From sequence record MZ574431.2: a stretch of DNA of 64,000 bases; one strand, written 5' to 3'. A model generated the notes under the pieces. That model had not been told where the DNA came from. It saw nothing but the letters and a program-made list of their open reading frames with translations, and searched no databases. Of the stretch, positions 12,536-23,461 are shown piece by piece. Every line of letters begins with the position of its first letter. The first letter of the stretch is position 1. The position numbers were made by a program, and so were the translations under genes.

Positions 12536-12610
12536 GCGGCTATAGCTCAGTGGTAGAGCGCCTGCTTGCCATGCAGGAGGTCGAGGGTTCGAGCCCCTCT
12601 AGCCGCTCCA
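12536..12610 (+). tRNA. tRNA-Gly(GCC)
   Basis: GCGGCTA/TAGCCGC acceptor, anticodon arm CCTGC-TTGCCAT-GCAGG, TTCGA T-loop, U73, CCA. Confidence 0.95.
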
Positions 12611-12632
12611 TTCTAAGCACAAGGACAAGACT

Positions 12633-12893
12633 ATGAAATCGCGCGACTTCTGTTATTGGCTCCAGGGCCTGTTCGAACTGCAAAACCCCGTGGTGATCAA
12701 CGAGACCCAGACCCGCCTGATCAAGGCGCATCTGAACATGGTCTTCACCCACGAGATCGACCCCAGCTTCCCGGCCGCCCAGCAGGCGGCGTTGAACGCC
12801 GATCACGAGGCCGGCAAGAAGCCCGCGTCGAAGAACAACGGCTTCTTCGAGATTGTCGATTCGGGCCGCCAAGAAGGCCTCATGCGCTGCTGA
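12633..12893 (+). CDS. Conserved hypothetical phage protein (86 aa)
   Basis: AAGGA RBS; N-terminal FCYWLQGLFE...IKAHLNMVF pattern. Confidence 0.7.
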   Translation: MKSRDFCYWLQGLFELQNPVVINETQTRLIKAHLNMVFTHEIDPSFPAAQQAALNADHEAGKKPASKNNGFFEIVDSGRQEGLMRC

Positions 12894-12923
12894 CGCGGCG
12901 CCCACTTCCCAGGACAATTCATC

Positions 12924-13214
12924 ATGCAGACCGTCGACCTTCTGGGCGACGCGCCATTCTGCGCGCGTCCAGGCTACCATCTGCGCGACTTCCGCAAGGG
13001 CGTACTGGGCGAGGCCTCCAAGGTCCGTGAGGAGACCGAGGAGTTCCTGGACGCCGTCGAGCAAGGCTCGCTGATCATGGCGTTGGTGGAGCTTTCCGAT
13101 CTCCACGGCGCCATCGAAGCCTATCTGGCCAAGCATGCGCCGGGCGTCACCATGGACGATCTCGCCCAAATGTCCGCCATCACCAAAAGGGCCTTCCGTC
13201 ATGGACGTCGCTAG
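12924..13214 (+). CDS. MazG-like nucleotide pyrophosphohydrolase
   Basis: All-alpha acidic motif KVREETEEFLDA...ELSDLHGAI (EExxE...ExxD) characteristic of dimeric dUTPase/MazG fold. Confidence 0.6.
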   Translation: MQTVDLLGDAPFCARPGYHLRDFRKGVLGEASKVREETEEFLDAVEQGSLIMALVELSDLHGAIEAYLAKHAPGVTMDDLAQMSAITKRAFRHGRR

Positions 13215-13779
13215 CTGGAAACGCCTTTCGCAGGCGATCGAGTTCTACACCGCGCGCGGCTACACCTATGTCGACGCGCCCTGGGCCGTACGCCGGCCGG
13301 TCATGGACATGACCTGCCCGCGCCCCGATCTAGCCAGTCCTCTGGGCGAGAAGTTCCTGGTCGGTTCGGCCGAGCAGTCCTTCCTGGACCTGGAGATCGA
13401 CGTCCTGGGCAAGGGACGCTTCGTGGCCTTGACGCCGTGTTTCCGCGTCGCCGATGAAGGCCGCTCACCGCTGCATGACGGCTACTTCATGAAGGTCGAG
13501 CTTTACGCCAATCTCACCGAGAACCGAGGGCGTGTCCTCAATCGCATGATCGACGACGCCATGACCTGTTTCCGATCCTTCGGGGCCGGTGACCTGGACG
13601 TCTACAACACCTTCGAGCAGGACGCCAAGCTGACCCGCGACATCGTCATGCGCGGCGTGGAGATCGGCTCCTATGGCATGCGCACGCGTCGCCATCCCGT
13701 GCTCGACGAGGACCACACCTGGGTCTACGGCACTGGCCTTGCCGAACCGCGCTTCTCGCGCGCCCTCCAGCGCCTCTGA
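13201..13779 (+). CDS. Minimal class II aminoacyl-tRNA synthetase-like catalytic domain (192 aa)
   Basis: LVGSAEQSF, motif-2-like TPCFRVADEGRSPLHDGYFMKVELY, VEIGSYG, motif-3-like GTGLAEPRF; no anticodon-binding domain; ATG overlaps the MazG-like gene. Confidence 0.65.
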   Translation: MDVASWKRLSQAIEFYTARGYTYVDAPWAVRRPVMDMTCPRPDLASPLGEKFLVGSAEQSFLDLEIDVLGKGRFVALTPCFRVADEGRSPLHDGYFMKVELYANLTENRGRVLNRMIDDAMTCFRSFGAGDLDVYNTFEQDAKLTRDIVMRGVEIGSYGMRTRRHPVLDEDHTWVYGTGLAEPRFSRALQRL

Positions 13780-13794
13780 TTAGGATTTCACGAC

Positions 13795-13840
13795 ACGCTG
13801 TCGTAATCCTTGACAAGCACGAATTTCTGTGAGACACGTC
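13795..13840 (+). promoter_or_regulatory. Promoter of tRNA operon 1
   Basis: TGTCG-TAATCC-TTGACA (13810-15) matching the repeated phage promoter motif. Confidence 0.6.
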
Positions 13841-13845
13841 GCCTT

Positions 13846-13911
13846 ATGACCTTCTCGATCTTCCTTTTCCGAGAGACCGGCTCGCCGAGCCGAGATACCA
13901 GCGCCTCCTAG
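13846..13911 (+). CDS. Candidate leader peptide of tRNA operon 1 (MTFSIFLFRETGSPSRDTSAS)
   Basis: ATG near predicted TSS; contains one Glu and one Asp codon; alternative CGGCTCG/CGAGCCG pairings. Confidence 0.35.
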   Translation: MTFSIFLFRETGSPSRDTSAS

Positions 13912-13939
13912 GCTGCTGGTACGACGGCTCGCGCTATGT

Positions 13940-14016
13940 GGGCCTGTCTTCTAAATGGACTAGGAATCTCGGCTTTCAATCGAGCAATGCGGGTTCGAGC
14001 CCCGTCAGGCCTACCA
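13940..14016 (+). tRNA. tRNA-Glu(TTC)
   Basis: GGGCCTG/CAGGCCT acceptor, CTCGG-CTTTCAA-TCGAG arm, T-arm, CCA. Confidence 0.9.
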
Positions 14017-14040
14017 ACATCACGATCGAAAGCCACCCTG

Positions 14041-14116
14041 GGCTCTAGGGTGTGAAGGTTAGCAGCGCCGGCTTGTCAGGCCGGAGGAAGGGGTTCGAGT
14101 CCCCTTAGAGTCGCCA
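14041..14116 (+). tRNA. tRNA-Asp(GTC)
   Basis: GGCTCTA/TAGAGTC acceptor, CCGGC-TTGTCAG-GCCGG arm, G73, CCA. Confidence 0.9.
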
Positions 14117-14118
14117 TT

Positions 14119-14362
14119 TGCCCAAGCGGGCACATCCAATCGAAAGCGCCGGGCAAGAGACTTAGCGGTCTCCAAGCGCCTGGGTCGAGCCAAAAACGCA
14201 GGGGTCGTCGGGTCCGCAAGGACAGCCCTGGTCAGTGAGCGATGGCGGATAAGAAATGGGTCCCAACCTGCTGAAGGTGGTTGGCGCCGCCGAGGGCGTT
14301 ACCTCGGATTTCACGTGACGACACTGCCCCACTGGCTTTTGCCATGCGCGTCCGTTGCTCTA
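14119..14362 (+). ncRNA. Candidate structured ncRNA co-transcribed after tRNA-Asp
   Basis: No credible ORF; nested helices (GAGAC/GTCTC, CAGGG..GTCC-GCAA-GGAC..CCCTG, GAGCGATGG/CCGTTGCTC long-range helix, CCAACC/GGTTGG, CCGAGG/CCTCGG, TGGC/GCCA), followed by a terminator. Confidence 0.6.
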
Positions 14363-14405
14363 GGACCCCAGGACAGGCTAGCCCTCTCCTGGGGTTTCCT
14401 TTTTG
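14363..14405 (+). terminator. Intrinsic terminator ending tRNA operon 1
   Basis: CCCCAGGA...TCCTGGGG stem followed by TTTCCTTTTT. Confidence 0.75.
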
Positions 14406-14431
14406 TGGGACCCAAGAAATTTTTCACGGAT

Positions 14432-14474
14432 TCGTGCATCGTTTCTTGACATCCTCTTGAGCCTGTGTCATAGG
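14432..14474 (+). promoter_or_regulatory. Promoter of tRNA operon 2
   Basis: CGTTTC-TTGACA(14446-51)-N17-CATAGG. Confidence 0.65.
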
Positions 14475-14525
14475 CTCAATCCTCAACAGCCCAGATCGGG
14501 CTTTCACTCCGCCGGAACAAGGTCC

Positions 14526-14645
14526 ATGACCCGCATCCATACCACGCTGACGACCGCCAAGCCCGCCTCCACCGGCGCGCTTACGCTCGCCTCGTGGCCG
14601 GCGTCGAGCAAGCCGCTATTGCGGCACTCAGCGGTTCTCGCCTAA
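14526..14645 (+). CDS. Leader peptide of tRNA operon 2 (MTRIHTTLTTAKPASTGALTLASWPASSKPLLRHSAVLA)
   Basis: AAGG RBS; 33 of 38 non-Met residues are P/T/K/L/H/A/S/W, the amino acids of the 12 downstream tRNAs; overlaps antiterminator helix. Confidence 0.7.
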   Translation: MTRIHTTLTTAKPASTGALTLASWPASSKPLLRHSAVLA

Positions 14646-14700
14646 CAGGCGACCGCTCCGGGTGCCGCTTCTAAGCCGCACCCGATCTCTCCTCCGACAC
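14612..14700 (+). promoter_or_regulatory. Attenuator-like RNA switch of tRNA operon 2
   Basis: Segments 1 GCCGC(14612-16), 2 GCGGCACTC(14621-29), 3 GGGTGCCGC(14660-68), 4 GCACCCG(14678-84); 1:2, 2:3 and 3:4 pairings are mutually exclusive; tail after 3:4 is pyrimidine-rich, not a U-run. Confidence 0.6.
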
Positions 14701-14770
14701 ATCTTCCCAAAACGTCGTAGCTGAACCGGGTGCTCCTGATCTCTCAGGAGATCGCCATCTATTTCAGTTT

Positions 14771-14846
14771 CGGTGTGTAGCTCAGTTGGTAGAGCACGGG
14801 GTTTGGGACCTCGGGGTCGGAGGTTCGAGCCCTCTTGCACCGACCA
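14771..14846 (+). tRNA. tRNA-Pro(TGG)
   Basis: CGGTGTG/TGCACCG acceptor region, CGGGG-TTTGGGA-CCTCG arm, CCA. Confidence 0.92.
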
Positions 14847-14916
14847 ATTCGCCCTCCGCCGGCCTTAGGCCGGACCGCGATCGCTTGAGCGTCGGCGGAG
14901 GCGTGTTCTTTGTCGT

Positions 14917-14995
14917 GCCGGTATAGCTCAGTCTGGTAGTCAGCGACTGCCTCGTAAGCAGTAGGTCCGGGGTTCGAATCCTCGTGCCGGCACCA
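14917..14995 (+). tRNA. tRNA-Thr(CGT)
   Basis: GCCGGTA/TGCCGGC acceptor, ACTGC-CTCGTAA-GCAGT arm, CCA. Confidence 0.92.
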
Positions 14996-15039
14996 CCAAG
15001 AACACGATCAACAGAAGGATCAACAAGACACAGACTTTC

Positions 15040-15126
15040 GGGCGAGTAGCCGAGTGGTTAAAGGCACCTGACTCTTAATCAGGCGTGAGAAATCCTACGT
15101 GGGTTCGAATCCCACCTCGCCCTCCA
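15040..15126 (+). tRNA. tRNA with Lys(CTT) anticodon on a class II (long variable arm) body
   Basis: GGGCGAG/CTCGCCC acceptor, 3-bp D-stem, CCTGA-CTCTTAA-TCAGG arm, 15-nt variable region, U73, CCA. Confidence 0.85.
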
Positions 15127-15213
15127 TCGATAAAGACTTCCATGTTCCCGTACGGGAACATTTCGGCCAGGACAAGGGTCCTGGGATGGAAATGTTCCCG
15201 ATCGGGATCACGG

Positions 15214-15300
15214 GCGGGTGTGGCGAAGTTGGTAGCCGCGCGAGTCTCAGGTACTCGTGGTCGAAAGGCCGGGGAGGTTCGAATCCTCTCACCCGCACCA
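15214..15300 (+). tRNA. tRNA-Leu(CAG)
   Basis: GCGGGTG/CACCCGC acceptor, CGAGT-CTCAGGT-ACTCG arm, long V-arm, A73, CCA. Confidence 0.93.
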
Positions 15301-15312
15301 ACACTCCTCTGG

Positions 15313-15399
15313 GCGGCGCTGGCGGAATGGTAGACGCGCCGGCTTCAAGTCCCGTGTGTCCGTAAGGATGTCCGAGTTCGAATCTCGGGCGCCGCACCA
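15313..15399 (+). tRNA. tRNA-Leu(CAA), imperfect anticodon stem
   Basis: GCGGCGC/GCGCCGC acceptor, CCGGC-TTCAAGT-CCCGT arm (3 WC pairs), long V-arm, CCA. Confidence 0.8.
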
Positions 15400-15442
15400 A
15401 GACGAGGGTTGGCGATGGAAAGCGAAGGTCAAAGCGAGACGT

Positions 15443-15529
15443 GCGGAAGTGGCGTAACGGTAGCCGCGCCAGACTGAGTATCTGGTGATCTAAAGGGTCG
15501 TGGAGGTTCGAGTCCTCTCTTCCGCACCA
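15443..15529 (+). tRNA. tRNA-Leu(GAG)
   Basis: GCGGAAG/CTTCCGC acceptor, CCAGA-CTGAGTA-TCTGG arm (U37), long V-arm, CCA. Confidence 0.9.
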
Positions 15530-15564
15530 AACACAAGGAGAGGTAAGAGACAGATTTGGTTTGT

Positions 15565-15636
15565 GCTGAAATGGCCTAGCGGTAAAGGCGCTGCATTGTG
15601 GATGCAGACACGATGGTTCGAATCCATCTTTCAGTG
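15565..15636 (+). tRNA. tRNA-His(GTG), no G-1, no encoded CCA
   Basis: GCTGAAA/TTTCAGT acceptor (G1:U72), CTGCA-TTGTGGA-TGCAG arm; next tRNA starts 2 nt after position 73. Confidence 0.85.
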
Positions 15637-15637
15637 C

Positions 15638-15713
15638 GGGGATATAGCTCAGTTGGTAGAGCAGTTGCTTTGCAAGCATCAGGTCGTCGGTTCGAGCCCG
15701 ACTATCTCCACCA
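15638..15713 (+). tRNA. tRNA-Ala(TGC)
   Basis: GGGGATA/TATCTCC acceptor with G3:U70, TTTGCAA loop, CCA. Confidence 0.95.
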
Positions 15714-15778
15714 GACCAGGGGACCCAGGCTGCGGCGCCGGATCGGCGACCACCTGGGTCCGTGACAACAAGAAAACT

Positions 15779-15872
15779 GGAGGGCTGGCAGAGCCTGGGT
15801 TAATGCACCCGTTTCGAAAACGGGCAGGGGCTGAAAGGTCCCTCGGGGGTTCAAATCCCTCGCCCTCCGCCA
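15779..15872 (+). tRNA. tRNA-Ser(CGA)
   Basis: GGAGGGC/GCCCTCC acceptor, CCCGT-TTCGAAA-ACGGG arm, long V-arm, G73, CCA. Confidence 0.93.
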
Positions 15873-15891
15873 ACACCAAGCCGGCATCTTT

Positions 15892-15983
15892 GGAAGGATG
15901 GCTGAGCCGGCTGAAAGCACCCGCCTGGAAAGTGGGTCGACCTCACAAGGGTCGCGGGGGTTCGAATCCCTCTCCTTCCGCCA
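15892..15983 (+). tRNA. tRNA-Ser(GGA)
   Basis: GGAAGGA/TCCTTCC acceptor, CCCGC-CTGGAAA-GTGGG arm, long V-arm, G73, CCA. Confidence 0.93.
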
Positions 15984-16018
15984 GATACCGAGCCGGCGCG
16001 GATCGCCGGCCGAAGCTA

Positions 16019-16108
16019 GGTGGGTTGACCGAGTGGTAAGGTGCGCGGTTGCTAACCGCAGGTCAGCCTGGAAGGGCTGCGGGGGTTCGATCCCCTCACC
16101 CACCGCCA
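16019..16108 (+). tRNA. tRNA-Ser(GCT)
   Basis: GGTGGGT/ACCCACC acceptor, TTGCTAA loop, long V-arm, G73, CCA. Confidence 0.93.
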
Positions 16109-16123
16109 TAGCTTCGACGATGC

Positions 16124-16200
16124 AGGGGTGTAGCTCAACTGGCTAGAGCGTCGGTCTCCAAAACCGAAGGTTGCGGGTTCGAGTCCCGCCGCCCCTGCCA
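16124..16200 (+). tRNA. tRNA-Trp(CCA)
   Basis: AGGGGTG/CGCCCCT acceptor, TCGGT-CTCCAAA-ACCGA arm, G73, CCA. Confidence 0.95.
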
Positions 16201-16544: not shown

Positions 16545-17045
16545 CTAGGCGTGTGGTGGGAAGTCACCCGTCAGGACGCCCGCCGTGCGCGCGTAGCAGA
16601 ACCAGTAGGAGCCGGTCCAGCGCAGCATGGCCACTTCGGGGACATGCACGGCCTCGACAAGGCGTTGATAGCCTGTGCCATCGCCCTCAGTATCCGCTTT
16701 GCCGTCCATATCCACATCAGGCTGCGAGGCCTGGGGAACCTGTAAGGTCAGAGCCGCCGAAACATCGGAGAAGACGATGCGAGGGTTTGCGACCCCGTAG
16801 TGAGGACGTGCGAAGACGACAACCTGAGAGGAGCCAAAGGCCGTATTTGTCCTCGGATAGAACTGAAGCTGAAGCTCATCGCCGACTTCCGTCGCCGGCA
16901 TGAGCGAAGCGTAGAAGGACCCTTGAAACGGTTGATCGGGATCGACTTGCTTCGTGTAGATGTCGATGATGCCGACCTCGCCATTGGCGTTCAGGATTTC
17001 GGCGGCGGCCTCGTAGACCGTGTTGATGACGATGGTTCTGGACAT
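16545..17045 (-). CDS. Hypothetical protein, paralogue B (166 aa)
   Basis: Shares PHYGVANPRIVF, (M/F)DGKAD(T/V)EGDG(T/P)GYQRL and LRWTGS(Y/F)WFCYAR blocks with 17066..17551. Confidence 0.8.
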   Translation of the reverse strand: MSRTIVINTVYEAAAEILNANGEVGIIDIYTKQVDPDQPFQGSFYASLMPATEVGDELQLQFYPRTNTAFGSSQVVVFARPHYGVANPRIVFSDVSAALTLQVPQASQPDVDMDGKADTEGDGTGYQRLVEAVHVPEVAMLRWTGSYWFCYARTAGVLTGDFPPHA

Positions 17046-17065: not shown

Positions 17066-17551
17066 TTAGAGTGAGAGGCTGTCAGTGGTCATCATGCCGA
17101 GCGAGCGGGCATAACAGAACCAGAACGAGCCCGTCCACCGAAGGAGTGCAACGAGAGGGACGCCGGGGGCTTCGCCCAAGCGCTGGTAGCCAGGACCATC
17201 ACCCTCGACGTCAGCCTTGCCGTCGAAGTCCAGGTCTTTCTGCTCTATCGCACCCGCGTACAGAGCCATAGCATCTGTGATGTTCGGCGCACGATCAGCG
17301 AAAACGATCCTCGGGTTGGCCACACCATAGTGCGGCAAGGCGAAGATCAGCACGGTAGCGAAGCTACCCTTGCTGGCGGGGAAGACCTGAACCTGGAGGT
17401 CGTCTCCGACCTCTCGACCGGGAGCGAGGGCGGCGTAGAGAAAGCCACCACCGATTTCAGGAATGATGTTGATCACCCCTTTGAGGCCGTTGGGATTTAT
17501 CGGCTCAGCTAATTGCCGTTCGGTGGCGCGCACCAGCACGTTCATCGCCAT
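17066..17551 (-). CDS. Hypothetical protein, paralogue A (161 aa, start MAMNV)
   Basis: AAGGA RBS before ATG 17551; homology to the neighbour begins after this start; the longer 17821 start crosses a terminator. Confidence 0.8.
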   Translation of the reverse strand: MAMNVLVRATERQLAEPINPNGLKGVINIIPEIGGGFLYAALAPGREVGDDLQVQVFPASKGSFATVLIFALPHYGVANPRIVFADRAPNITDAMALYAGAIEQKDLDFDGKADVEGDGPGYQRLGEAPGVPLVALLRWTGSFWFCYARSLGMMTTDSLSL

Positions 17552-17703: not shown

Positions 17704-18060
17704 TCACGCCATCGCTGCGTTGCGTTTCCCGCGCTGCTTTTCCAACGCGGCCTCCATCGACTGCCAAACGAGCCGAGGCCGCCACGGCTCCTCGTTGTAA
17801 GGCGTGTCCAGGTAGCACCACCCCTCGCTAGGGGTCGCCAGGATCGGAAGACCTTCGAAGTCTTCGTCCTGCTGCTCCTCGGGGGTCAAACGCCGCGTCG
17901 ACCAACGCAACCCGCCGCTCGGCAGTTTGGCGAATTCCAGGCCGCTAGGATCGCGGTCCTCGTCGAGGATGTCGAAGAGTTCGGTGAGGTCCTGGGCATT
18001 GACCAGGAAGGCCTCGGTCTGTTCGTCGGGATCGATCGCCCGCACGAGATAGAGCGCCAT
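17704..18060 (-). CDS. Acidic hypothetical protein (118 aa, start MALYLV)
   Basis: GGAG RBS, GC3-rich codons, bracketed by two near-identical terminators. Confidence 0.75.
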   Translation of the reverse strand: MALYLVRAIDPDEQTEAFLVNAQDLTELFDILDEDRDPSGLEFAKLPSGGLRWSTRRLTPEEQQDEDFEGLPILATPSEGWCYLDTPYNEEPWRPRLVWQSMEAALEKQRGKRNAAMA

Positions 18061-18147
18061 GGGTGTCTCCTTTGTAGGCAAAGCCAAGGTGGGAGACAAG
18101 GACCGGGTTGTCCAGGCACTATAGTGCTGAAAAGAGGTCCAGACACG

Positions 18148-18173
18148 AAAAAGGGCTCCCGAAGGAGCCCCTT
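18148..18173 (-). terminator. Intrinsic terminator ending the large ncRNA
   Basis: GGGCTCC-TTCG-GGAGCCC-TTTTT on minus strand. Confidence 0.85.
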
Positions 18174-18174
18174 G

Positions 18175-19016
18175 CGTAGGGTTCAAAGGCTTGAGACACT
18201 AGGGCCTTCACGACGAGACCTCAGGGATTATCCTTGTTCAGGTTCCCCTGGGTGTCCAGGAGCCTTTCGGCTTCTCTGTCCCGCCAACGACGGTCATTTT
18301 AGGTCCACCACAGACCGTCCTGATGTACTACTCAGCCTCTCCACTACCATCAAAGGCTGGCCGGCCCTCAAAGGAAGCTTCCTGACACTCGTTACGACAC
18401 CTTGCGAGGTCCCGCAACGTCCCTGCTAAGCCGAAGCCCAGGGAACGTAGTCGTCTATTGCACACCAGCGGCCAGACTTTCGCTTTTGCTTCGTCAGCCA
18501 AATGATGATTGGAGGTTGGTTTACGCCCCCAGCTTGCCTTCCCTAGTGACGACGTGCTGTCCAGAGCTTCGTGGCTTTTGGCCACAAAATACTCGACGCC
18601 GTCCTGATCCCTAGATGGGACCGATCTGATCCGATTACCCCTCCAGGTGCTTTTCACACCCAGCTTGGAACCCAGAACAAATTGGGTCTCGCCCTAAGCC
18701 GGTATCACTCCGACCTCGAACTGTCGCAGATAGCTGTCGCTGATCCGCCCCCTACACCTGAATCCTCGTCCACTCGGTCGTTTGAGTTGACATGTCCGGT
18801 GGTTCTCAGGCCACACCAGAGCGTCTCACGACGCCTTTCGAACACATCACGACCTCATCGACTATCCTCCACCCCCGCTTTTAACGGGCTATGAAGGACG
18901 GGCTGGTTAGACCCGGTCTTCGATGCCTGCTTGAGTGGTCCCGGTTGCCCAGGCGACGAGGGGTAGGTCCCCCGCCCAGCCTCCGAGTTGCCCCGGCGGC
19001 CCCGCTCTCAAGCGAT
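18175..19016 (-). ncRNA. Large ornate ncRNA candidate (GOLLD/ROOL class), ~840-870 nt
   Basis: Bounded by a minus-strand promoter and terminator; no ORF with the phage codon bias; many minus-strand GNRA/UUCG-capped hairpins and long-range helices. Confidence 0.75.
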
Positions 19017-19022
19017 GACTGG

Positions 19023-19051
19023 GTTGTAGACGGACGATTTCCGGCGGTCAA
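19023..19051 (-). promoter_or_regulatory. Promoter of the large ncRNA
   Basis: Minus strand TTGACC-N17-TACAAC. Confidence 0.75.
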
Positions 19052-19094
19052 CAGCCAAATCGCACTTTTTTCGAAAAAGTTTCGATCGGCGTCG

Positions 19095-19137
19095 CGATGA
19101 CGCGTTTCTTGACCCGCCCTTCGCGATCAGGCAGAAC
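19095..19137 (+). promoter_or_regulatory. Divergent promoter with phage motif
   Basis: GATGACGCGTTTC-TTGACC(19109-14)-N17-CAGAAC. Confidence 0.6.
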
Positions 19138-19139
19138 CA

Positions 19140-19473
19140 TCGGCGAGGGCGCCACGCGTAGTGGAAGAATCCGTGATCCCGCCCAAGGCGACGCCGCGTA
19201 TCGACCTACGGTCATGCGCAATAGGCCGACCCTAAGCCGCATCGCGTCGACTACCTGCATGCTCCAGGCACTGAGCAAATCCCGGTCCGGCGGACATCCC
19301 ACGAAGCTGGTGGAGATAACCGGAGGTTACCGTTCCTGTGGAGCGGATGGAAGGAAGGGTCTCAGTCGAGCCCTGGTAGGCCGTCCAGCCAGTAGCGCTG
19401 CTGTCTGGGTCCGGGACCGCCCAATCGACGACTCGCGAAAAGAGCCCGGCTGGTTTCGCGGCTGGCCGGGCTC
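19140..19473 (+). ncRNA. Candidate structured ncRNA divergent from the large ncRNA
   Basis: ~330 nt after a promoter; TCCCGG/CCGGGA and CGGAC/GTCTG long-range helices enclose several hairpins; terminal GAGCCCGGC/GCCGGGCTC stem. Confidence 0.5.
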
Positions 19474-19494
19474 ACTAACCGCTTGAGAACCCTC

Positions 19495-19818
19495 ATGATC
19501 GACAACACCTTCATCCAGGCCGACGGCCCGCTCTATCTGACGCTGGAAGCGGCCCTGGAGGCGCCCGGCGCGATCTACACCCACGTCAAGAAGGGCGGCA
19601 TCTATCGCCGTATGGGTGAGGCCAAGTACGCCGGCGACGCGGCGGCCCAGACGCTGGAAGGCGTGATGATGGCCGTCTATGAGCACCTCTACCCATACGC
19701 GCACTCCTTCTTTGTGCGTCCTCAAAGTGAGTTTGTCGAGGTCGTGCGGACCCAGCATGGCGAGCACCGCCGTTTCGTCTTTCACACCAATGAGATACTG
19801 ACCGTTCTCGACACTTGA
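19495..19818 (+). CDS. DUF1653-like small protein (107 aa)
   Basis: IYTHVKKGGIY...VYEHLY...FFVRPQSEF...RRF matches the YxHxKG..Y / VY..LY / xVRP..F / RF pattern of DUF1653. Confidence 0.65.
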   Translation: MIDNTFIQADGPLYLTLEAALEAPGAIYTHVKKGGIYRRMGEAKYAGDAAAQTLEGVMMAVYEHLYPYAHSFFVRPQSEFVEVVRTQHGEHRRFVFHTNEILTVLDT

Positions 19819-22714: not shown

Positions 22715-22786
22715 GCTTCAGTAGCTCAGTGGTAGAGCGCCGTCTTGACATGGCGGAGGTCGAAGGTTCGAACCCTTCCTGAAGCA
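22715..22786 (+). tRNA. tRNA-Val(GAC), no encoded CCA
   Basis: GCTTCAG/CTGAAGC acceptor, CCGTC-TTGACAT-GGCGG arm; abuts tRNA-Ile. Confidence 0.9.
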
Positions 22787-22787
22787 C

Positions 22788-22863
22788 GCTAGGTTAGCTC
22801 AGTTGGTAGAGCACCGGACCGATAATCCGGTTGTCACAGGTTCGAGCCCTGTACCTAGCACCA
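22788..22863 (+). tRNA. tRNA-Ile(GAT)
   Basis: GCTAGGT/ACCTAGC acceptor, CCGGA-CCGATAA-TCCGG arm (C33), CCA. Confidence 0.92.
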
Positions 22864-22978
22864 AACACTTATACGCTTTACCGTATAAAGTAAAAATATA
22901 CGATCTAGCGTATAAAATGACTTGAACTTACCGAATTCGGTAAATAAAAAGAGGTGAACAGAGGAAAGGACAAGTAAC

Positions 22979-23053
22979 GGGCCGGTAGCTCAGTGGTAGA
23001 GCGCTGCTGTCACATAGCAGATGTCGAGTGTTCGAGACACTCCCGGCCCACCA
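22979..23053 (+). tRNA. tRNA-Val(CAC)
   Basis: GGGCCGG/CCGGCCC acceptor, CTGCT-GTCACAT-AGCAG arm (G32), CCA. Confidence 0.92.
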
Positions 23054-23060
23054 GTTCAGT

Positions 23061-23134
23061 TGAAGCATGGTGTAATGGTAGCACATCAGAGTTTGGTTCT
23101 GGGAGTCTAGGTTCGAGTCCTAGTGCTTCAGCCA
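23061..23134 (+). tRNA. tRNA-Gln(TTG)
   Basis: TGAAGCA/TGCTTCA acceptor (U1:A72), TCAGA-GTTTGGT-TCTGG arm, G73, CCA. Confidence 0.92.
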
Positions 23135-23188
23135 ACTGAAAGAGTTTCAGGTCTCATGTGACGAGATCAGGAGAGAGAAGGCGAGTTT

Positions 23189-23263
23189 TTCCGAGTAGCT
23201 CAGCGGTAGAGCAGCGTGCTGTTAACACGACGGTCGGTGGTTCGATCCCACCCTCGGGAGCCA
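23189..23263 (+). tRNA. tRNA-Asn(GTT)
   Basis: TTCCGAG/CTCGGGA acceptor, CTGTTAA loop, G73, CCA. Confidence 0.93.
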
Positions 23264-23278
23264 TTACTTCTTCTCCAC

Positions 23279-23357
23279 GCCCGGTTAGCTCAGCGGAATT
23301 AAGAGCAGACGCCTACGAAGCGTAAGGTCGGGGGTTCGAATCCCTCACCGGGTGCCA
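23279..23357 (+). tRNA. tRNA-Arg(ACG)
   Basis: GCCCGGT/ACCGGGT acceptor, CTACGAA loop, CCA. Confidence 0.93.
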
Positions 23358-23386
23358 TTTTCACGTATGCAGTGCTTCGGCCCTGC

Positions 23387-23461
23387 GGGGATGTAGCTCA
23401 GTGGTAGAGCGGGAGACTGAAAATCTCCGCGTCGGTGGTTCGACCCCACCCTTCCCCACCA
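23387..23461 (+). tRNA. tRNA-Phe(GAA)
   Basis: GGGGATG/CTTCCCC acceptor, GGAGA-CTGAAAA-TCTCC arm, CCA. Confidence 0.93.

Follow-up and report, generated by a model that had tools for sequence, protein, structure and literature searches.

A Predicted Gene for a Divergent GOLLD RNA between Two tRNA Arrays of Caulobacter Jumbo Phages

The genomes of a group of Caulobacter jumbo phages contain, between gp139c and gp140, a stretch of DNA to which no gene has been assigned, and the question that it raises is what, if anything, this DNA encodes. The window considered here comprises 64,000 nucleotides from sequence record MZ574431.2. An initial annotation, made from the letters of the window, had proposed for its minus strand a non-coding RNA of about 870 nt of the GOLLD/ROOL class, running from a promoter to a terminator. 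GOLLD has been known since 2009, the year in which Weinberg et al. reportedly described the RNA. We will argue that the minus strand from about 19016 to 18148 is very probably an independent gene for a GOLLD-family RNA of about 869 nt, with predicted transcription by the host sigma73 polymerase, a probable two-domain fold and, by extension from a known relative, a possible cage-like assembly. This reading is based on the match to the family model, the homology of the 5' junction, the covarying structure, the lack of a coding signal, and the conserved promoter and terminator motifs. The coordinates of the features are collected in Table 1.

For a 1-kb query around the locus, the identity is 100% with the Caulobacter phages RB23, C1, C2 and J4 as well as with two Bertelyvirus sp. 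records, 99.6% with BL47, and ca 83% with CcrBL9 and CcrSC. The phages carrying the locus belong to the genus Bertelyvirus (Dolichocephalovirinae); they are jumbo siphophages with genomes of 300-327 kb, and their host is Caulobacter vibrioides CB15. The matched locus is without annotation in 11 of 11 GenBank records, and the gap common to them corresponds to window positions 18061-19494. The proposed RNA gene is part of a short minus-strand island, on either side of which there is a plus-strand tRNA array, with 22 tRNAs in total. ARAGORN finds no tRNA between 16200 and 22715, and PHROG searches gave no function for the seven flanking proteins. A phage genome with a tRNA island is the typical setting of GOLLD (PMC12286853; PMC6582537). 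It is also the setting found here, in DNA of the RB23 phage group and with tRNAs on either side of the locus.

Table 1. Features of the locus and its surroundings, in window coordinates.
Feature	Position	Strand	Description
tRNA array	12536-16200	plus	15 tRNAs
gp139c	ATG at 18060	minus	ca 90 nt downstream of the RNA
Predicted intrinsic terminator	18173-18148	minus	GGGGCUCC-UUCG-GGAGCCCU, then UUUUU
GOLLD 3' domain	18187..18604	minus	universally conserved half, modelled by RF02032
Linker after first 3'-domain hairpin	18490..18546 (approximate)	minus	aligned to unpaired, variable Rfam stretch
Remainder of 5' domain	18605..18926	minus	two further multi-helix subdomains
5'-terminal four-way junction	18927..19016	minus	RNAalifold and covariance model R1
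Predicted sigma73-type promoter	19051-19023	minus	-35 TTGACC 19051-19046, 17-nt spacer, -10 TACAAC 19028-19023
Upstream conserved block	19055-19494		440 nt between RNA promoter and gp140
gp140	ATG at 19495	plus	divergent neighbour
tRNA array	22715-23461	plus	7 tRNAs

The class of the RNA follows from the comparison with Rfam that the initial annotation had suggested. Using Infernal (cmscan), the GOLLD model RF02032 matches the minus strand at 18604-18187 over its full length (model 1-416 of 416) with 104.4 bits. The E-value is 5.7e-28 for a search of 1.6 kb and 2.3e-26 for the whole 64-kb window and all 4227 families, and the match, which is present in a single copy, is the top-scoring one of all families in the window. 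The orthologous loci score 119.1 (CcrBL9), 120.1 (CcrSC) and 104.4 bits (BL47), with E-values of about 1e-31 for the first two. ROOL and the other large-RNA families, on the other hand, gave no match at E <= 10 in 17800-19400 with permissive filters, and ROOL gave none at E <= 0.001 on the whole window. The class is therefore GOLLD specifically. ROOL is likewise a large, ornate phage RNA that occurs near tRNAs, and it forms a cage (PMC12286853), but in both sequence and secondary structure the present RNA is a GOLLD. Judged from sequence, the region is a divergent member of an already known family rather than a categorically novel one, and our confidence in the GOLLD identity is high.

The signature GOLLD motifs, namely AUUUUGU...CAAAAG, AAAGCGAAAGUCU, CGCAAGG, GAGUAG, GGGGAA...AUAAUCCC and UCUCA, are all aligned to upper-case consensus positions. 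The fit is poor at the outer stems of the P21 three-way junction (model about 216-283) and at the hairpin at model 308-324. It is important to note that the gathering score of Rfam for GOLLD, 150 bits, which is an operational cut-off for annotation and not a biological property, is not reached by the 104.4 bits obtained here or by the 119-120 bits of CcrBL9 and CcrSC, whereas a canonical GOLLD, the locus L034, scores 226 bits. Default annotation thus misses the gene, and at the gathering thresholds the window yields 22 tRNAs and nothing else. With 104-120 bits, compared to 150 for gathering and 226 for the canonical case, this lineage consists of divergent members of the family.

We now consider the secondary structure. 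The alignment consists of four distinct sequences from three lineages, and each half was folded with RNAalifold. The consensus of the 5' half (19022-18605) has 133 pairs, of which 16 are changed on both sides and 3 are broken, while that of the 3' half has 124 pairs with 7 compensatory and 1 broken; since two of the three lineages are close to each other, these counts represent few independent events. Column shuffles (40) served as the reference: z is -9.0 for the 5' half, where 16 compensatory pairs stand against 6.0 +/- 1.8 (maximum 11), and -5.4 for the 3' half, with 7 against 1.8 +/- 1.1 (maximum 4). The reverse complements resemble the shuffles (z of -2.2 and -2.9, with 6 and 2 compensatory pairs, for the 5' and 3' halves, respectively). 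Also the single 869-nt sequence distinguishes the strands, with z = -4.4 on the minus strand vs -1.25 on the plus strand. The secondary structure covaries, in a strand-specific manner, over the whole length of the RNA. The covariation that the initial annotation had asked for is in other words present in both halves, and the seven tetraloop and other hairpins that it had listed are all found on the minus strand where it had placed them, in folds that exceed chance.

The helices of the 3' domain can be assessed in a further way, as the Rfam consensus itself is independent of the present sequences. When 12 Rfam helix segments (75 pairs), placed by eye from the model alignment, are transferred to our alignment, 286 of 300 cells are paired (95%) and 8 pairs are compensatory, including pairs in the long-range helix (model 145-154 with 289-298) and in the terminal hairpin. 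In slid controls, in which the 3' partners were moved by 1-3 columns, pairing drops to 34-50% with 0-1 compensatory pairs. The linker of ca 57 nt is without an embedded tRNA according to ARAGORN, and it is equivalent to the variable, disordered linker of GOLLD. Two long-range helices had been put forward initially, with different outcomes. The helix AGGGCC/GGCCCT (18363-68 with 18201-06) is present in the window, but the AGGCCT of CcrBL9 and CcrSC breaks two of its pairs. It was given up in favour of a local terminal hairpin, in which the changes are compensated (GGC...GCC to AGG...CCU). The helix GCTTGAG/CTCAAGC, on the other hand, is confirmed. It closes a four-way junction at the 5' end, and it has compensatory changes in a distant GOLLD.

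This junction consists of the closing helix GCUUGAG/CUCAAGC and three hairpins, two of which are capped by GNRA loops that read GCAA, the second being GAAA in CcrBL9 and CcrSC. The remainder of the 5' domain contains the hairpin GCGUC-GUGA-GACGC and, at 18646-18660, an invariant hairpin whose loop is GAAAA. Rfam covers only the 3' half of GOLLD, and two covariance models were hence built from the Bertelyvirus 5' domain, R1 from its first 90 nt and R2 from its last 144 nt. R1 matches L034, which is the GOLLD of the IMG/VR contig IMGVR_UViG_3300044699_000008, at 7728-7647, on the same strand as the 3' domain of that RNA and ca 330 nt upstream of it, with 21.7 bits and an E-value of 1.7e-4 (3.2 kb searched). 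Across 84 sources (875 kb), L034 is the sole non-self match of R1, at E = 0.095. The two junctions have a common architecture: besides the closing helix, both contain a hairpin capped by GCAA, a second one of the type GGCGGG...CCCGCC, and a third. In the model-fitted alignment of the junction, which leans toward the model and in which one row is a reverse-strand noise hit, 97% of the cells are paired and 10 of 30 pairs are compensatory; none of 500 shuffles equals this, and slid controls give 33-48%. We take the 5'-terminal junction, on the strength of these alignments, to be homologous to that of canonical GOLLD.

With R2, nothing significant was found in L034, and the central ca 320 nt of the 5' domain are, as far as tested, specific to this lineage. 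This agrees with published work, according to which the 5' region of GOLLD is less conserved (PMC12286853). As to the family traits of a length above 800 nt and a less conserved 5' domain, the RNA is predicted to have 869 nt, and its 5' domain of ca 412 nt is structured and covarying.

Taken together, the RNA is like other GOLLDs in that it matches the whole 3'-domain model, signature motifs and helices included, in the unpaired linker after the first 3'-domain hairpin, in its many GNRA loops, and in its location in a phage tRNA island. It is unlike them in its score of 104-120 bits, the poorly aligned P21 junction, the linker without a tRNA, a G+C content of 58%, an alphaproteobacterial host, and a central 5' domain that is unmatched among the GOLLDs compared.

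The distribution of the gene was examined in sister phages and in genome and metagenome collections. No GOLLD was found, at E <= 0.01, in the syntenic tRNA regions (32 kb each) of the phiCbK-like phage CcrSwift and the Brevundimonas phage Bambus. Within the members of the subfamily examined, the gene looks specific to Bertelyvirus, and because of its absence from these syntenic regions it looks like an acquisition. No close relatives beyond Bertelyvirus were found in IMG/VR, the JGI metagenomes or the GTDB genomes: nhmmer profiles of the 5' domain, the 3' domain and the upstream block returned nothing outside the genus, and searches for gp140 synteny returned Bertelyvirus genomes only. The gapped pattern AAAGTCT...GAGTAG...ATAATCC identified 81 loci in IMG/VR, of which one out of 15 tested reached the GOLLD gathering score, and most of the 81 are probably chance matches. 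A separate, specific pattern of fixed spacing occurs in IMG/VR in CcrBL9 and CcrSC only and has zero matches in the GTDB genomes. Its one match in a metagenome lies inside an open reading frame with a PAS-sensor-like translation. In the literature searched, nothing was found that connects Caulobacter phages with GOLLD.

An acquired gene with a score below the gathering threshold and with some mismatched Rfam helices could be a decaying, non-functional remnant left by horizontal transfer, which would account for the low score. This scenario is very improbable in our assessment. Compensatory changes are favoured among the substitutions that separate the species, and 95-97% of the pairs are intact; the promoter and the terminator are maintained, and the RNA is 79-88% identical between species while the flanking non-genic DNA is unalignable. 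The compensatory changes, the kept signals and this difference from the flanks point to purifying selection on the structure.

Alternatively, annotation might have missed one or more small proteins encoded at this locus. Mechanical open reading frames of 101-109 codons do occur on both strands, but none in the region exceeds 121 codons, and their positions and frames are not conserved between species. On the minus strand each frame contains 9-15 stops and on the plus strand 6-11, and indels of 1-2 nt are present. The substitutions are spread evenly over the codon positions, with variable columns modulo 3 of 40/30/24 in the 5' half (p = 0.12) and 19/19/16 in the 3' half (p = 0.85). As a positive control, gp140 at equal divergence gives 8/3/35 (p = 4e-9) without any indels, which means that the test has power. 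The initial annotation, which had seen no ORF with the phage codon bias, had named a lack of covariation or a conserved coding frame in homologues as outcomes that would speak against the RNA, and neither has appeared. There is next to no chance that proteins explain the locus.

We now turn to the ends of the RNA. The promoter TTGACC-N17-TACAAC, proposed initially, is present on the minus strand, and both its hexamers are invariant in the four phage sequences while the spacer varies. Malakooti, Wang and Ely reportedly gave, in 1995, the Caulobacter sigma73 consensus as TTGACGS-N10-14-GCTANAWC. The predicted promoter fits this consensus. The pattern TTGAC-N14-18-CTANAWC occurs once in the 64 kb, at the promoter site, compared to an expected 0.07 occurrences. 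The distance from the beginning of the sigma73 motif to the transcription start is 34-37 bp in 93% of Caulobacter cases (PMC4287350), and this spacing leads to a predicted start at about 19014-19017, directly preceding the closing helix of the junction (19013). At the other end, the UUCG terminator that had been proposed was confirmed in the letters, which read AAGGGGCTCCTTCGGGAGCCCTTTTT there. Its calculated fold energy is -20.6 kcal/mol, and the values for CcrBL9 and CcrSC are -20.8 and -21.9 kcal/mol, despite a change of the loop from UUCG to UCCG and changes in the stem. Measured against CcrBL9, the 5' half is 79% identical, the 3' half 88% and the terminator region 86%, and directly downstream the value falls to an unalignable 46%. 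Between the predicted ends the RNA is about 869 nt long, made up of ca 412 nt, ca 418 nt and a short tail.

These data also bear on the scenario in which the RNA is no free-standing molecule, but a cis-acting 5' leader or attenuator of the minus-strand genes gp139c-137c. It shares its strand with gp139c, whose ATG follows ca 90 nt downstream, and a separate promoter for gp139c is not predicted. However, a strong and conserved intrinsic terminator separates the two, and the similarity between species stops at this terminator. In addition, the gene downstream of the RNA in the RB23 group is unrelated to that in CcrBL9 and CcrSC (E of 25 and 0.6) while the RNA is kept, which disfavours a cis-acting role, and the homologous family consists of free-standing RNAs. 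We consider a leader function highly unlikely, and an independent gene remains the preferred reading.

A second scenario concerns the 5' end. The block upstream of the promoter is 85-86% conserved between species and is non-coding (22/22/21, p = 0.99), and it is moderately structured, with z of about -4 on either strand. One could therefore imagine a longer RNA that starts near or inside gp140 and has the block as its 5' extension, corresponding to a GOLLD precursor of ca 1.3 kb. A hairpin in the block, GCGTC...GACGC/T, indeed stays paired, as G-U, on the minus strand only. However, several other wobble changes favour the plus strand, and the block has many broken pairs and a covariation term of about 0, compared to -10.6 for the 5' domain. 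Furthermore, the invariant sigma73-type promoter is located exactly at the first helix of the junction, the junction aligns end to end with that of canonical GOLLD, and the sole minus-strand TTGAC further upstream, at 19589, is inside gp140. The longer RNA is thus quite improbable, and a start at the junction is retained.

For the block itself, another role can be proposed. Its promoter-proximal end carries the motif CGATG-N-CG-Y-GTTTCTTGAC, followed ca 17 nt later by a -10-like hexamer. There are six copies of this recurring promoter-type motif on the plus strand of the window, and the copy at 19109, downstream of which the block begins, faces gp140. On this ground, the block is probably a conserved leader of ca 350 nt of the divergent gp140 operon and not a part of the RNA. 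A plus-strand open reading frame at 19097-19486 was dismissed as a gene, as it has no periodicity, contains frame-breaking indels, and gives a translation rich in Arg, Ser and Gly. The two divergent -35 elements lie at a distance of 57 bp from each other, with an invariant, AT-rich near-palindrome between them (19064-19080).

On the basis of these results, the following scheme can be outlined for the independent GOLLD gene. The host sigma73 RNA polymerase would transcribe the RNA from the TTGACC/TACAAC promoter and would be stopped by the UUCG hairpin terminator. The transcript would then fold into a 5' domain of ca 412 nt and a 3' domain of ca 418 nt, connected by a flexible linker. This split is similar to that of GOLLD env-38 with 420 and 413 nt, for which cryo-EM has revealed an RNA-only 14-mer of D7 symmetry, held together by kissing loops and A-minor contacts (Kretsch et al. 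2025, PMC12286853). By analogy, copies of the phage RNA may self-assemble into an RNA-only multimeric cage, and for a divergent Caulobacter phage RNA we put the prospect of cage formation at about even.

One detail of the 3' domain is relevant here. The RNA lacks the hairpin at Rfam model about 249-265, and the loop at the consensus cGCAA (model 237-241) reads CGGCCA. That these are peculiarities of the present phages was ruled out, because the canonical L034 has both the CGGCCA loop and the missing hairpin; they are accordingly traits of a subtype. The 3' region of env-38 begins at residue 421, with the kissing dinucleotide of L21a at 656-657, and L21a is one of two self-kissing loops that join the GOLLD half-shells (PMC12286853). 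Going by residue numbering only, the CGGCCA loop is probably L21a, and its GGCC, which is self-complementary, is a candidate for a symmetric kissing contact.

What the cage would do is a matter of speculation. In other GOLLDs, the levels rise at lysis and the RNA has been found in ribosome pull-downs (PMC12286853). These reports, together with the position in the tRNA island, led us to propose that the cage could act on the translation apparatus or the tRNA pool late in infection, although any specific function assigned to the RNA is at present doubtful.

The GOLLD cage is a 14-subunit RNA-only particle larger than the ribosome. The present results would place the gene for such an RNA in isolated lytic jumbo phages, namely RB23, C1, C2, J4, BL47, CcrBL9 and CcrSC, and would fill 1.4 kb that is left unannotated in eleven GenBank phage records. 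The host, Caulobacter vibrioides CB15, is a non-pathogenic model bacterium and offers strong genetics, synchronisable cultures and good cryo-tomography, which makes this a tractable GOLLD system in which a knock-out, expression timing, partner pull-down and imaging of the cage inside the cell are ordinary experiments. It should also be pointed out that the Rfam gathering threshold hides divergent GOLLDs and that the host range of the family, extending here to Alphaproteobacteria, is probably under-counted.

Finally, we have considered whether there is a GOLLD subtype, made up of the Bertelyvirus RNA and L034, to which current models are largely blind, defined by a lineage-specific central 5' module of ca 320 nt, a four-base self-kissing GGCC loop and one 3'-domain hairpin fewer. 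In such a subtype, the stoichiometry or the geometry of the cage could differ from the 14-mer of env-38, since the cage is capped by the 5' domains. The RNA could also constitute a co-regulated module with the structured, divergent leader, as their promoters lie back to back. We regard this extended proposal as unlikely. The Bertelyvirus RNA and L034 have the palindromic GGCC in the CGGCCA loop, the absence of the hairpin at model 249-265 and an identical layout of the 5' four-way junction in common, while similarity in primary sequence is undetectable with nhmmer. The linker of L034 carries a tRNA-Gln, unlike that of the Caulobacter phage RNA, and the distance from the junction to the 3' domain is ca 250 nt in L034 compared to ca 320 nt here.

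The non-coding block on the 5′ side of gp140, the plus-strand gene divergent from the GOLLD RNA, is conserved at 85–86% identity across Bertelyvirus species. Codon periodicity is absent from the between-species comparison of this block (22/22/21 by codon position). Its folding indicates moderate structure on either strand (z about −4), and compensatory changes are seen in a few of its hairpins. The greater part of the block (19145–19494) probably makes up a long, conserved leader at the 5′ end of the gp140–142 operon.

Just 5′ of the gp140 start, an invariant 9-bp GC-rich hairpin followed by UCUUUU looks like an intrinsic terminator when read on the minus strand, and no minus-strand gene ends there. 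Read on the plus strand, the same site would give a stable hairpin ca 20 nt ahead of the ATG.

An extended promoter-like motif, CGATG-N-CG-Y-GTTTCTTGAC followed after ca 17 nt by a −10-like hexamer, is repeated on the plus strand of the window and may represent a class of phage promoters. The upstream extension is missing from the GOLLD promoter. Midway between the back-to-back promoters of GOLLD and gp140 lies an invariant AT-rich near-palindrome, in the only stretch of the region with a GC content below 50%. It could serve as an operator or as an UP element.

Coordinates of the features (window positions unless a locus is named)
Feature	Position	Strand	Details
gp137c	16545–17045	minus	phrog_28405
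gp138c	17066–17551	minus	phrog_28405
First 3′-domain hairpin	18571–18585	minus	loop CAAAA(G)
Invariant 5′-domain hairpin	18646–18660	minus	loop GAAAA(G)
Conserved block	19055–19494		ca 440 nt, with ca 350 nt in the probable leader part
Near-palindrome	19064–19080		ACTTTTTCGAAAAAAGT; single copy in the window
Promoter-like motif, TTGAC	about 19109, 22335, 25432, 27548, 36888, 60369	plus	hexamers TATAAG, TACGGT, GACAAT, CACTAA, CATGGA, CAGAAC
Hairpin before gp140	19434–19473	minus	GAGCCCGGC...GCCGGGCUC
Canonical GOLLD, L034	6954–7728	minus	226 bits; uncultured viral contig
CcrSwift gap, L091	16160–17446		NC_019411.1 49620–50906; ca 1.3 kb, unannotated
tRNA-Sec-like match, L091	16164–16246		44 bits
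tmRNA match, L092	16879–17010		31.9 bits, E 4e-9

The canonical GOLLD of L034, a locus on IMG/VR contig IMGVR_UViG_3300044699_000008, carries an embedded tRNA-Gln in its linker. Its 5′ four-way junction, its CGGCCA loop and its lack of one hairpin are all found in the Caulobacter phage RNA too, so that both RNAs appear to be of one subtype. Within the Caulobacter phage RNA, the invariant 5′-domain hairpin resembles the first hairpin of the 3′ domain. The latter hairpin is also the top match in L034 of R2, a covariance model of the last 144 nt of the Bertelyvirus 5′ domain, at a non-significant 7.1 bits. The likeness may stem from a motif common to both hairpins or from a duplication within the RNA.

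The gene content of the minus-strand island 3′ of the RNA varies by species: the RB23 group has three genes there, CcrBL9 and CcrSC a single, unrelated one. By their common match, gp137c and gp138c are paralogues.

We now turn to other phages. In CcrSwift, a gap between two tRNA clusters is syntenic with the GOLLD position and runs up to an annotated terminator; no GOLLD match was found in it, and at its start there is a tRNA-Sec-like match below the gathering score of 47. The tmRNA match of the Brevundimonas phage Bambus, likewise below its gathering score of 47, falls at an unannotated spot within the tRNA cluster. Finally, a 31-nt piece of the 3′ domain, taken from where its conservation is highest (about 18255–18285), shows 87% identity (E about 1) to unannotated regions of the Vibrio phages VspSw_1, Brizo, ValDsh2 and relatives (hits H35–H41), and these short matches could be due to chance or mark additional unannotated GOLLDs.
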